DNA of 64,000 nt from Phallusia mammillata (lineage: Eukaryota), in contig OZ281495.1 of assembly GCA_965637545.1 (NCBI GenBank), positions 18,352,001 to 18,416,000 of the forward strand, given 5' to 3'. Every line of letters begins with the position of its first letter. Position 1 is the stretch's first letter. Shown here one piece after another: positions 6,416 through 49,047 of the stretch. The notes under the pieces were generated by a model. The model saw only the letters and a program-made list of their open reading frames with translations, did not search any database and had not been told where the DNA came from. The position numbers were made by a program, and so were the translations under genes.

Positions 6416-6839
6416 ATTTCAAGTAAAGACAAAAAGTCCACAAAGGGGAGTGGAACATGGTCAAGTTCTTCTGCCGTGTTCTTTTCGAAGACCCAAAACA
6501 AAACTTCCTTTTTATTCTAAGCGTGTTGAGTGGCATAAAATTAACAAACAACAAATCCGAACAAAAGTTTTAAGAAAAGAATGGATTATCGATCAAAGTT
6601 TTGGTTCATACAGGTAAGATTGTATTACACAAGCCGACGTAGTTTTTGCTTAGATTACCTTTGACAACAAATAAATGTTGTCAATATTTGCGAATTAAGG
6701 AACCGTGTATCCTTATCACCCAAAGAGGGAAATGCTTCGTTGGTTATTGAACGGTTAAAACTTTCCGATTCTGGTACATATGTCTGCGAAGTTAGGGTTG
6801 GAGTTCAAAGAAGCAGCGGTCTTGTGGTCCTGAATGTCG
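6416..6839 (+). CDS. Ig V-set domain, exons 6416-6613 and 6700-6839 (86-nt phase-2 intron)
   Basis: Spliced: GQVLLPCSF...RVEWHK...SYR|NRVSLSPKEGNASLVIERLKLSDSGTYVCEVRVGVQRSSGLVVLNV. Shows B-strand Cys, C-strand Trp and the D-x-G-x-Y-x-C motif. Donor cag|gtaag 6614, acceptor taag 6699, donor g|gtcagt 6840. Confidence 0.9.
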
Positions 6840-9800
6840 GTCAGTGGTTTTGTTGTGTGTTTTGTTTACAAGATGTACTCCATATTTGTATTATGAAATA
6901 CCCATTTGCTCACTAAAACGCTTTATCTGTGCTCCAATTTTGAACAAAATTACATATTCAATTTACTACGAGTTTGTGTTTAAAACAAGTCTTAATACTG
7001 TTAGAAATAATTTTGTTTTTGCGATTTGTAGGAAAATTTGAGAAAACAATTGCACACACAACAACGCAACGTCAAGTAAAATTGTGGAAAAACGTTACCA
7101 TCGATCATATCCTATCTACTGTTACTCCTTCAACGATAAAAAGCAGAGTAATATCCACTTCAGTCAAAAGATTTACATTTACCTTAACAGATAAATTGTC
7201 TTCGTTACTTCATTCCGACAATGTCCATGCAACTACTGGACAAACCTACAAGTTAATGACATTGACCTCATTAGGTTCATTATCATTTGTTTCAACCCAA
7301 CAAATGACCACTACAACACACACAAAAACGAGTTTAGAATTTACTTTGGACGAGTGTTCAAAAATTGTAGATCCAAATCTTTTGAGCAAATTAGTGTACA
7401 AACATGGAGAAAAAATCAAACTTCAAGGTTGTAAAGTAGTATACTTTTCAACAACAAAATCTATTCACCCCTCGTGGCTTTCCACAATACGTTCGTATGA
7501 TGAAACTACAGTATTGGTAATCACGGATTCGTTATGTCTACTTGGATCTATTCCATGTACTGTGTCGAGAAATATGAAACAAACACTTAGAAGTAGGACA
7601 GAAAGTGAAGAAATTATATCAACCTCAGTACAATTCCTTGATATTGGAAAGATGTTCACACATGAAGCTGTTTCTAAAACTGGTGATATACCTCAATCGT
7701 ATTCGGGTAAAGCAGAGAGCCAGCCAATAAACAACTTCGTGCTTTTTGGAACAAACCAGGAAGTATCTGCTGGGCCAGGTTCATTCTCTACTGATATGTT
7801 AGTACATAAGTCCAAAGCTGCATTTCATCTTGGTACATTTACAGAATATAAATTATCACAACACGTAACAATGAAAACAGCAGCCTACCAAACGCAATTG
7901 AATGATAAAAAATCGCTGATGACAATGGAAGCAATGACTTTACAAACGAGCATTGTAATACAAAATCAAACCCAACCAACGATAGTGACTGTACAGCAAA
8001 CAACTGGTAAAACAACAAAATACTTTTCTTCTACATTATCAGCTTCTGCTTCTGATAAAGTACTGATTTCTTATGCGATTTCTGATTTTAACGTTGTAAC
8101 TATAAATCCAGTTGTCACAATAATTGAATATTTTTCAAGTTTGTCTTTTGTCACAAAACCTATTTTACAGGAAACACTGCAATCAACTCACGAAAACAAG
8201 CCATTTGTCTCAAGTTTTCTCAGCATTACTCAAGAACGCATTAAAAGCTCCAATGTCATTGGCGATATTCTTACACTTCAGTCACTTACCAAAACGTTAA
8301 AAATGCGCTCATCTATTGGAAGCAAATTAGTTGCAACAATTAGTAATTATAATTATCGAAACACTACGCATGACTTTTTTTCATTTCCTACTGAGGCCAT
8401 GGAAGTAGTTTCTGACAACAAAATATCTACTACTTGGTCCGGCCGATCCATTTTGGCTCAAACGACTGCTTACAGATTTAAAGTTTCCCCCCAAACAATA
8501 CCGACGCAAATATTAGGAAATGGAAGTTTAGTTGGTGAATCCTTAGCTCCGCAATCAGTACATCATACGAAAGCAGAAACATCAACAAACACCAAGAAAG
8601 TCGTCCAAAGTTCAAGAAATAACTTCTCTGTCAATTTGTCACAAAAAGAAGAGCATTCCACTGAAACCAAGACACAATTTTGGATTTCAAATATTGCAGA
8701 TGACTCACTTTCAACTAAAGATGGAATAAAAACACATGATCTCTCAACTTCTGTGATCTTTTTTATTCCACAAACCAATGCAGTATTTCCGACGGCTTAT
8801 CCACCTTCATTCAGTCAGTATATCGGAGACGATCCAACAACTCTACACACTCCGTCACCGATAACACGTTTTGATACATATAAACATGCCGGAAACAACT
8901 TTAAAACTTCGGTTATTTCTTTTTCCCAGTTCATGTCAAACACCACGAAGATCTACAAGGTTGCTCATTCCAGTAACAACATGCAGAGAAAAAGTTTAAC
9001 AAAAATAATCCCAATAGATTCACGTGCCTCTCGCGCGACGGAACAGCCAAAAGCGAAAACGTTAACAACTGTTGAAAACTATTGGCAAATTACAAAAAAT
9101 CCTAAAACAATCATATCAAAAGAAGATTCAGATGCCACAGAGATTGCAAAAACGTTTTTGAACAAAAAAACTCTAAAAAATCTTTTAGCCACCGGAAGTG
9201 AATCGATTTTTGGGAACAACACCATAACAACTGAGCCACTAAAAGCAAAAACAGACAGCAAAACGTTTTTCATTTCACCCTCTTATCGGTACAGCAGTAC
9301 CAATAAACCATCACCATTAACCAGTAAAAGTTCAGCAGAAACAAGAACTGAAAACATCACTATCATATCGCTATTTCAAAAACGAAGAAAACCTGTTGTG
9401 CCTTCCGCATTAACGACGGAAGATATCACATCATTCAGTTCTCGAAAAGCATCAACATCCAAATCTGAAACAACAAAAATTATAACAACTGTTGAAGGAT
9501 CAACAGTAAATCCGACCAAACCCATTTCACTTATCGAATCGTCGGCATTCGAAACAACTAAAGAAATTATCTCACAAATTTTACCAACCATCACCACAAA
9601 GAAACGTGATGAAATTTTAAAAACATCTTATTCCATAAACATTACTTTAACAAAAGAAATTACTGCCACGACGAAAAAACTCCCTGGATTGTTCAAAACA
9701 AAATATTTCGAAGAAGCATTAACCACCGGAAGCGGATTGGCTGTTGATGACATTTCCACATCTGTTGGAACTGCAGCTTCAACCTCAGAAGATATTAAAG

Positions 9801-48800: not shown

Positions 48801-49047
48801 TGGTAAGATTGCCGATACCGTTTTATGTACTCTATAGTTTTCAAATGTCTATATCTTAGGTGGCTGTGGACCGTTTCCCCAAGTTGCCAACGCTCAACCC
48901 ATCCCATTCTACAATCCTAATCGAGTTCCCATTAATGTATTGTATGTTTGCGATGATGGTTATGAAACGTCTGGTTTAACTATTATACGGTGTAAAAACG
49001 GCAGATGGACAACACCAAAACTTCTCTGCACTAAAAATGACTCATAG
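6416..49047 (+). CDS. Giant lectican-like (aggrecan/versican-type) extracellular proteoglycan: IgV - S/T-rich repeat region - EGF x4 - C-type lectin - CCP x5; multi-exon, true 5' end uncertain
   Basis: 15 exons joined by GT-AG introns with matching phases: 6416-6613, 6700-6839, 7032-43760, 43826-43939, 43996-44118, 44315-44440, 44721-44834, 44888-45055, 47406-47509, 47594-47732, 47817-47996, 48060-48236, 48297-48476, 48617-48802, 48860-49047 (TAG). Total 38,866 nt, about 12,954 aa plus leader. Domain motifs read directly from the translation. Confidence 0.88.
7032..43760 (+). CDS. Giant 36,729-nt exon, Ser/Thr-rich mucin/GAG-attachment region (12,243 codons)
   Basis: Stop-free ORF 6974-43786. 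Acceptor gatttgtag|ga at 7031 completes a Gly codon in phase 1 with the Ig exon. Donor ata t|gtaagc at 43761 is phase 1 and matches the EGF exon. Confidence 0.85.
9515..39345 (+). repeat. Coding tandem array, 687-bp/229-aa unit, 43 full units plus a partial 44th
   Basis: Unit start (act/acc aaa ccc att tca) recurs at 9515, 10202 ... 39056, exactly 687 apart. The antisense shadow ORFs recur with the same period. Unit is about 30% Ser+Thr (counted by hand). Confidence 0.97.
43826..43939 (+). CDS. EGF-like exon 1
   Basis: PRCPLDACQNGGTCVMDGFTDFYCICPPGLVGKTCEI, six-Cys EGF; phase 1-1; acceptor tttttaaag, donor g|gtaatt. Confidence 0.92.
43996..44118 (+). CDS. Calcium-binding EGF exon 2
   Basis: DDDECYYMNDFCDHSCINTFGSYECLCRNGFYLGKDKTTCI; D-x-D-E-C and C-x-N-x-x-G-S-Y-x-C motifs; phase 1-1. 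Confidence 0.92.
44315..44440 (+). CDS. Calcium-binding EGF exon 3
   Basis: DTDECLDETLNKCAHYCNNTAGSYTCSCRRGHTLGDDELTCK; acceptor cgttag; donor aag|gttgtt is weak. Confidence 0.88.
44721..44834 (+). CDS. EGF-like exon 4
   Basis: VVDYCRSDPCQNNGLCHSREGRYYCICPSGFTGFRCEV; acceptor aaatag, donor g|gtacgt. Confidence 0.92.
44888..45055 (+). CDS. C-type lectin domain exon a
   Basis: DLSIPCSKGWRKFQGFCYFFPKTKRRTWKDANRYCRNNYGASLVSIHSTNESKYLA; donor a|gtaagc, phase 1. Confidence 0.92.
45998..46802. mobile_element. hAT MITE inside the 2.35-kb lectin intron
   Basis: TIR cagtggttcccaacc / ggttgggaaccactg; exact 8-bp TSD gtttaaaa at 45990 and 46803. Confidence 0.88.
47406..47509 (+). CDS. C-type lectin domain exon b
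   Basis: ...YQWTGLNDRRKENNFVWSDGSPL| (WIGL-type and WSDG motifs); acceptor catttag, donor ttg|gtaagc, phase 0. Confidence 0.92.
47594..47732 (+). CDS. C-type lectin domain exon c
   Basis: [46 protein letters not shown]; acceptor ctgaag, donor g|gtcagt. Confidence 0.92.
47817..49047 (+). CDS. Five sushi/CCP exons (47817-47996, 48060-48236, 48297-48476, 48617-48802, 48860-49047)
   Basis: Each exon is phase 1 at its start and has the C..P...NA....Y.C..G.....C....(W/F)..P...C pattern. The last ends ...WTTPKLLCTKNDS* (TAG 49045-49047). Confidence 0.92.

Follow-up and report, generated by a model that had tools for sequence, protein, structure and literature searches.

A window of 64 kb (contig OZ281495.1, positions 18,352,001 to 18,416,000, the whole stretch of DNA analyzed here) contains a Link-less giant glycoprotein gene that bears the C-terminal G3 region of lecticans, the family of aggrecan, versican, neurocan and brevican. 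The gene probably comes from a tunicate. With moderate confidence, we favor the reading that it is one gene for a very large glycoprotein and that its G3 cassette of EGF, C-type lectin and CCP modules is the tunicate counterpart of lectican G3, pre-dating the vertebrate duplications. The label "proto-lectican" is plausible but unproven.

Hyalectans have an N-terminal V-set immunoglobulin (Ig) domain with LINK modules, a C-terminal end of EGF, C-type lectin and CCP modules and a glycosaminoglycan (GAG) region between the two, and have been reported in chordates only (Hynes, PMC3308698). The lectican family has been treated as a vertebrate novelty (Root et al., bioRxiv 10.1101/2020.09.24.311837). 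For amphioxus, two expressed sequence tags (ESTs) resembling the EGF-lectin end and no lectican ortholog were reported (Meulemans and Bronner-Fraser 2007, PMC1950077). A limited literature search returned no description of a tunicate gene that combines an Ig domain, a rod and a G3 end.

Gene Model and Domain Order

Reading of the DNA combined with splice-site fitting resulted in one plus-strand gene at about 6424-49047 of the window (GC content 37%, single run of N at 53524-53723). Its exons follow each other in the order two Ig, one giant exon, four EGF, three C-type lectin and five CCP, and then a stop codon (Table 1). All junctions have AG..GT ends and are frame-compatible. From EGF1 to CCP4, every domain exon is of phase 1-1 when the lectin is counted across its three exons; the two Ig exons keep the frame jointly, not singly. 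The introns measure 86 nt within the Ig domain, 192 nt between the Ig domain and the giant exon and 65 nt between the giant exon and EGF1.

The encoded protein comprises at least 12,950 residues and ends nine residues past the last CCP cysteine (stop codon at 49045-49047). No transmembrane segment follows CCP5 and the gene model holds no membrane anchor; the predicted giant protein is presumably secreted. Upstream of the Ig exon, the candidate first coding exon in Table 1 is the sole hydrophobic open reading frame (ORF) that is led by an ATG and has a usable donor; it has no RNA support.

A first-pass annotation of this DNA had proposed the order of an Ig V-set domain, a long Ser/Thr-rich region, EGF, C-type lectin and CCP. 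We recovered this order as one gene where it had been placed. The single EGF and the single CCP of that proposal gave way to four and five copies, respectively.

Table 1. Exons and other features of the giant glycoprotein gene (coordinates within the window)
Feature	Position	Strand	Details
Candidate first coding exon (speculative)	5361-5427	+	ATG, short hydrophobic leader, phase-1 GTAATG donor
Ig exon a	6424-6613	+	reading frame, GT donor at 6614; acceptor alternatives 6416 or 6357
Ig exon b	6700-6839	+	Pfam V-set (6701-6838) E 7.8e-7; AG/GT ends; phase-1 donor
Ig-to-giant-exon intron	6840-7031	+	192 nt, phase 1 on both sides, donor GT at 6840
Giant exon	7032-43760	+	36,729 nt, 12,243 codons, phase 1-1; donor T/GTAAGC at 43760/43761
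Tandem array	9524-39751	+	44 units of 687 nt (229 aa), in register; dominant k-mer spacing 687
45th array unit, degenerate	to about 40440	+	follows unit 44
EGF1 exon	43826-43939	+	114 nt, phase 1-1; Pfam EGF E 1.6e-10
EGF2 exon, calcium-binding type	43996-44118	+	123 nt; Pfam EGF_CA E 1e-8
EGF3 exon, calcium-binding type	44315-44440	+	126 nt; Pfam EGF_CA E 3.6e-9
EGF4 exon	44721-44834	+	114 nt; Pfam EGF E 3.5e-10
C-type lectin exon 1	44888-45055	+	168 nt, phase 1-1; Pfam Lectin_C
C-type lectin exon 2	47406-47509	+	104 nt, phase 1-0; Pfam Lectin_C, weak
C-type lectin exon 3	47594-47732	+	139 nt, phase 0-1; QPN, E, WND calcium-site residues; Pfam Lectin_C
CCP1 exon	47817-47996	+	Pfam Sushi
CCP2 exon	48060-48236	+	Pfam Sushi
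CCP3 exon	48297-48476	+	Pfam Sushi
CCP4 exon	48617-48802	+	Pfam Sushi E 1.8e-11
CCP5 exon, including the stop codon	48860-49047	+	Pfam Sushi E 5.1e-8

The C-Type Lectin Domain Is Assigned to the Lectican Type

Unless a single exon is named, the lectin comparisons used the spliced 137-residue domain, assembled by script. Vertebrate lectican lectin domains scored 95-123 bits against this query (42-56% identity), and the best of 887 other fetched domains reached at most 92 bits (35-43% identity). In the PDB, the best single-domain match of lectin exon 3 was rat aggrecan (1TDQ_B, 47.4 bits), with MRC2 at 40 and collectin-11 at 34 bits. Exons 1 and 2 were less discriminating: rat aggrecan scored 33.8 and 25.7 bits, respectively, and ranked second for exon 2. 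Selectins were absent from the PDB matches listed for any of the three exons.

A HMMER search with exon 3 covered 1.84 billion representatives, with summed scores that favor proteins with several C-type lectin-like domains (CTLDs). Within the best 150, the matches in a single stretch were exclusively short ORFs, 60-65% identical to exon 3. Two single-exon ORFs of this kind were recovered, and a follow-up search identified such ORFs as fragments of vertebrate lectican exon 3, with matches named versican, neurocan and aggrecan.

Maximum likelihood trees (LG+C20) placed the query next to the same family. In the first tree (91 domains), the query was sister to 25 lectican domains (support 95/95; lectican monophyly 100/98), and the next outgroup was one CTLD of an amphioxus MRC-like protein. 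In the second tree, to which all CTLDs of turtle MRC1, of a lamprey MRC2-like protein and of an amphioxus MRC2-like protein were added, the query grouped with 14 vertebrate lecticans (99/97; lectican monophyly 100/100).

The exon structure agrees with this placement. The three lectin exons of aggrecan from the lizard Podarcis (159, 83 and 145 nt; phases 1-1, 1-0 and 0-1) have their boundaries at the same alignment positions and in the same phases as the 168, 104 and 139 nt exons of our gene. The three-exon layout also occurs in some other CTLD genes and rules out selectin and collectin types only.

The domain is a long-form C-type lectin that keeps the calcium-site residues QPN, E and WND. Based on score ranking, both trees and the shared intron positions and phases, we assign it specifically to the lectican type, as the first-pass annotation had claimed for this end of the protein. 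By the same comparisons, which did not include the amphioxus ESTs, no known invertebrate sequence comes closer to the lectican tail than the C-terminal end of the gene. EGF, C-type lectin and CCP modules stand in the order of lectican G3, with additional EGF and CCP copies. The CCP modules (exon lengths 177-188 nt) matched lectican CCPs at a generic level (23-38 bits).

The Gene Lacks Link Modules

Searches for Link modules remained negative throughout. The Xlink model (PF00193) had no match at E<=1 in the 57 plus-strand open frames of at least 30 residues within 1-7031 or over the initial 822 residues that the giant exon encodes, and none at E<=0.1 in the other scanned parts of this exon. When two Link modules of a fish neurocan-like locus (L002, Anarrhichthys ocellatus contig ML171163.1) were compared by tblastn with both strands of the whole window, the best match had an E value of 0.25 over 17 residues. 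The intron between Ig exon b and the giant exon is exactly 192 nt long, because the Ig exon ends at 6839 and the giant exon begins at 7032 after an AG, and it has no coding potential. The length given for this intron in the first-pass annotation was therefore exact, and its claim that Link exons are absent withstood the Pfam scan, including that of the N-terminal region, and tblastn; the intron is too small to hold them.

In the 6.4 kb before the gene and the 15 kb after it, tblastn detected neither a Link module nor a second HAPLN-like Ig domain. At the fish locus, a HAPLN-like gene (L002 19145-22700) lies tail-to-tail with the neurocan-like gene, 6.4 kb downstream. As read from the DNA, our gene has no Link module, and the two-Link G1 region of lecticans is missing. 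It is not a lectican in the strict sense, because it has neither Link modules nor a HAPLN neighbor.

The same absence could be secondary. A chordate ancestor would then have had the arrangement Ig-Link-Link-GAG-G3, from which tunicates deleted the Link exons, consistent with their lacking hyaluronan. Gene and domain loss is well known from tunicates, a frame-compatible intron such as the one observed is exactly what the removal of phase 1-1 exons would leave, and a position as sister to all vertebrate lecticans suits loss as well as primitive absence. Xlink domains are moreover present in Ciona and amphioxus, some of them near the HAPLN and aggrecan cluster (PMC12383584). We nevertheless consider such a loss unlikely: no Link remnant was found in the 192-nt intron or elsewhere in the window, and an invertebrate lectican with Link modules is not reported in PMC1950077, PMC3308698 or bioRxiv 10.1101/2020.09.24.311837.

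A Giant Exon with a 44-Unit Tandem Array

The giant exon lies within an uninterrupted plus-strand ORF (6974-43786), which is not a product of chance since the GC content of this DNA is 37%. Serine and threonine together make up 30% of the encoded residues, proline about 4%, and only 7 of 12,242 residues are cysteines. We counted 121 N-glycosylation sequons and 127 Ser-Gly dipeptides (74 expected); the latter occur three times per repeat unit, close to acidic residues. Such a sequence would permit chondroitin or keratan sulfate chains of the kind that lecticans carry.

Most of the exon is a head-to-tail array. Its period of 687 nt exceeds the limit of Tandem Repeats Finder, which was blind to it, and k-mer spacing was used instead. 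Neighboring units are 97-99% identical (lag identity 0.97-0.99), and identical 687-nt units recur at intervals of two to four units; 21/23/25, 22/24 and 34/37 are examples. This spacing implies recent block duplications and points to very recent duplication or conversion of blocks of two to three units within the array. The number of copies may be polymorphic, or the assembly may leave it uncertain. A comparison of 40 units yielded 80 distinct variants, of which 29 are synonymous and 51 non-synonymous (omega about 0.55); not a single stop or frameshift occurs across the 30-kb array.

Pfam detected no domain in five stretches of the giant exon (covering the first 822 residues, a 700-aa sample of the array and the last 1,920 residues). 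A word-index search with a 10,000-residue reference, scored on the unique part at the C-terminal end of the exon, returned neither an annotated copy nor a giant relative of that part within the length ranges covered. The same type of search with a piece made of lectin exon 3 and CCP sequence had no match. A single-sequence AlphaFold model of two repeat units was uninformative (predicted local distance difference test score 31).

The earlier description of this part as a Ser/Thr/Ser-Gly region thus applies to its Ser/Thr richness; the region consists mostly of 44-45 copies of one 229-aa unit. The central region is likely to form a glycosylated, extended rod.

The Ig Domain Resembles Generic V-Set Domains

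Ig exon a spans V-set strands A to C' and includes LLPCSF with its Cys and VEWHK with its Trp; exon b, which carries the motif DSGTYVCEV, spans strands D to G. All canonical V-set features (Cys, Trp and DxGxYxC) are present. The domain is interrupted by the 86-nt intron at 6614-6699. Exon a matched Pfam weakly and had no PDB match at E<=10. Exon b matched CD276, CEACAM1, pIgR, CD4 and CAR at 33-40 bits in the PDB (generic V-set and I-set domains) and generic Ig fragments alone in the ESM Atlas.

The Ig domain of the fish HAPLN scored 41 bits against the full domain of our gene, 19.8 bits against exon b and 14.3 bits against exon a. In the PDB, this fish domain itself reached 39 bits with pIgR and 20.8 bits with aggrecan G1 (9dff). 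The entries 9dff and 9dft hold an aggrecan core protein chain of 335 residues, the G1 region. In the HAPLN-like gene of Anarrhichthys ocellatus, an intron of about 1 kb interrupts the Ig domain at another position than in our gene.

Because the fish HAPLN Ig matches aggrecan G1 this poorly, Ig sequences of the lectican/HAPLN family hold little family-specific signal. On the basis of these matches, we describe the Ig domain of the gene as a generic V-set domain, which could still be homologous to the lectican G1 Ig. The first-pass annotation had stated that both ends resemble lecticans specifically. This applies to the lectin end; at the Ig end, generic V-sets outscored the fish HAPLN Ig on exon b.

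These results bear on an origin as a lineage-specific chimera, in which only the EGF-lectin-CCP part is homologous to lectican G3 and the Ig domain and the repeats were added independently in tunicates. In a variant, the vertebrate gene acquired its whole G1 from a HAPLN-like gene. In either version, the layout from Ig to lectin would be convergent and the gene would not be a proto-lectican. Such an origin is possible, though we do not regard it as probable. It would fit the generic Ig domain with its best PDB matches to CD276, CEACAM1, pIgR and CD4, the mere 19.8 bits of the fish HAPLN Ig on exon b and the different placement of the Ig intron. It would also fit the central exon, with a repeat unit without relatives, no giant relatives of its C-terminal part and no Pfam domain in the scanned stretches, as well as the surplus of EGF and CCP modules over lecticans. 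Amphioxus, too, has lectican-like EGF-lectin ESTs and no clear ortholog (PMC1950077). However, the weak similarity of the Ig domain is no argument against homology, because Igs of the true family are equally dissimilar, as the 20.8 bits between the fish HAPLN Ig and aggrecan G1 illustrate. The N-to-C order and the phase-1 junction in a Gly codon after the Ig domain match the lectican layout.

Transcription, Unity of the Gene and Host

One spliced RNA contig (run X9) joins 48476 to 48617 and 48802 to 48860 with GT..AG ends, as modeled. The splicing of CCP3, CCP4 and CCP5 is thus the RNA-supported part of the gene model (one informative contig in four probable RNA runs). RNA bears out these two junctions and does not cover those at the two ends of the giant exon. 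Five DNA runs from three studies contained 78-94% of the sampled words from the 3' part of the gene.

The giant ORF has no leader or signal peptide of its own, and no ATG lies between its stop codon and the first cysteine of EGF1. Since the gaps are only 192 and 65 nt, the splice signals are good, the phases match and a separate leader or ATG is lacking, the predicted Ig, giant and EGF-lectin-CCP exons very probably form a single gene. It is conceivable that the locus instead comprises two or three genes, or that the assembly inflated or collapsed the array. Two key junctions without spanning RNA and a first exon that is not established would agree with separate units, and units that are 97-100% identical, several pairs being identical, are difficult to assemble. 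We regard either case as very improbable, given the short and frame-matched gaps, the missing signal peptide of the giant ORF and the missing ATG upstream of EGF1. A frame maintained across 36.7 kb and the recovery of the 3' words in the five DNA runs also speak against these alternatives.

The first-pass annotation took the genome to be non-vertebrate, and our data agree. Introns of 57-192 nt and a lectin domain outside the vertebrate lectican clade with its 100% support argue against a vertebrate-like genome.

Other Elements in the Window

The 2.3-kb lectin intron contains a repeat (45400-46800) that matched many contigs of the four probable RNA runs at 95-99%. The loose ends of these contigs continue into unrelated sequence, and the repeat probably represents a transposable element that is transcribed and also occurs elsewhere in the genome.

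A short element that has a tRNA-like box B (GGTTCGAACCCAGGA) and is flanked by T-rich sequence occurs at 5700-5782, 5834-5916 and about 55751-56047, with two of the copies in tandem just upstream of the Ig exon. The element looks like a tRNA-derived short interspersed nuclear element. Inverted arrays of a 20-nt minisatellite occur at 1624-1860 and 3488-3657, 1.8 kb apart, with 111-nt arms that are 92% complementary; they may represent a foldback-type element. An open frame at 56785-57036 resembles, by eye only, a fragment of a piggyBac-type transposase.

Comparison with Known Gene Families

Like our gene, lecticans have an N-terminal V-set Ig domain, a long central region without recognized domain, C-terminal EGF, C-type lectin and CCP modules in this order, phase-1 module exons and no membrane anchor. 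They also share the sister lectin domain (95-99% support, 42-56% identity), encoded by three exons with the same boundaries and phases. In contrast to lecticans, the gene has no Link modules, and therefore no aggregate with hyaluronan or link protein is predicted. It has four EGF modules where lecticans have two, and five CCP modules where they have one. The lectin site reads QPN rather than QPD, an intron interrupts the Ig domain, and no HAPLN gene is adjacent in the window. The central region, a 44-45-fold array of a 229-aa unit with about 12,000 residues, is unrelated in sequence to any lectican GAG region tested.

The amphioxus ESTs share with our gene a lectican-like EGF-lectin end in an invertebrate chordate (PMC1950077). 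They are partial and do not cover N-terminal parts, whereas here the whole locus is available, with an Ig start and a giant exon. HAPLN link proteins also start with a V-set Ig domain, at the end of which a phase-1 intron interrupts a Gly codon. They consist of this Ig domain and two Link modules and nothing more, and the similarity of the fish HAPLN Ig is weak (41 bits for the full domain).

Mannose-receptor family and invertebrate multi-CTLD proteins (MRC1, MRC2 and LY75-like) have long-form CTLDs of similar sequence. These proteins contain a series of 8-16 CTLDs, headed in vertebrates by ricin and FN2 domains, and have no EGF before and no CCP after the CTLD; the gene has both. We rejected membership in this family, as the gene has a single CTLD, not a tandem array of 8-10, and the CTLDs of turtle MRC1 and of the lamprey MRC2-like protein fell outside the clade of query and lecticans in both trees.

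Selectins combine C-type lectin, EGF and CCP modules as well. Their order is lectin-EGF-CCP followed by a membrane anchor, whereas the EGFs of our gene precede the lectin and no anchor is present, and selectin membership was rejected. The selectin lectin domain is encoded by a single exon. With giant tandem-repeat mucins, the gene shares a huge single exon, near-identical Ser/Thr-rich units and small flanking Cys-rich domains. It differs from them by its low proline content (about 4%), the hydrophobic stretches in its units, the absence of VWD, CysD and SEA domains and its lectican-type end modules.

Origin and Possible Function

Several observations weigh against the reading that we favor, a single giant glycoprotein gene with a tunicate counterpart of lectican G3. 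No family-specific signal was found in the Ig domain by the PDB, ESM Atlas and fish HAPLN Ig comparisons. The junctions between Ig and giant exon and between giant exon and EGF1 had no cover in the four probable RNA runs, in which expression appears low, and neither a start codon nor a signal peptide is established for the gene model. When PDB scores were summed over the lectin exons, CTLD2 of human MRC2 was about level with rat aggrecan (110 vs. 107 bits). The trees contained no selectins, other vertebrate CTLD groups, cyclostome lecticans or human MRC2 CTLD2, and no EGF-lectin-CCP genes of amphioxus or other tunicates. Finally, with proline at only about 4% and many hydrophobic residues, "mucin-like" is a loose description of the central region.

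A stronger proposal takes the gene as directly orthologous, on the tunicate side, to the single lectican that existed before the duplications, with an ancestral state of IgV, glycosylated rod, EGF, C-type lectin and CCP into which Link exons were shuffled later. We consider this direct orthology doubtful. Two phase-1 Link exons would then have been inserted on the vertebrate stem, into the intron that measures 192 nt here, and the HAPLNs would have arisen later by duplication of the new G1.

Under the favored reading of one gene with a G3 counterpart, the C-terminal cassette would be older than the vertebrate gene duplications. The central region is predicted to be heavily O- and N-glycosylated, possibly with GAG chains at the three Ser-Gly sites per unit, and would form an extended, hydrated bottle-brush. 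By analogy with lectican G3, binding of the lectin domain to tenascin or other matrix ligands is probable and would depend on Ca2+. Ascidians possess tenascin, which is a ligand of lectican G3 in vertebrates (PMC3308698). The Ig end would bind another, putative partner. With each end binding such a partner, the molecule would cross-link or coat matrix or mucus independently of hyaluronan.

Lecticans have been treated as a vertebrate or chordate novelty connected with cartilage, brain matrix and neural-crest migration (PMC3308698; PMC1950077; bioRxiv 10.1101/2020.09.24.311837). A gene of this kind in the sister group of vertebrates provides a concrete outgroup for the lectican family and an order of assembly that can be tested, in which the tail, perhaps together with the Ig domain, preceded the Link modules. 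It also offers a handle on the role of a lectican-type G3 in an animal without hyaluronan. The "proto-fibronectin" and "proto-VWF" of ascidians are a parallel. The gene may thus show how the vertebrate lectican family was assembled; if the direct orthology proposed above were true, a single exon insertion into a giant proteoglycan that already existed would have given rise to the hyaluronan-aggregating matrix of cartilage and brain.

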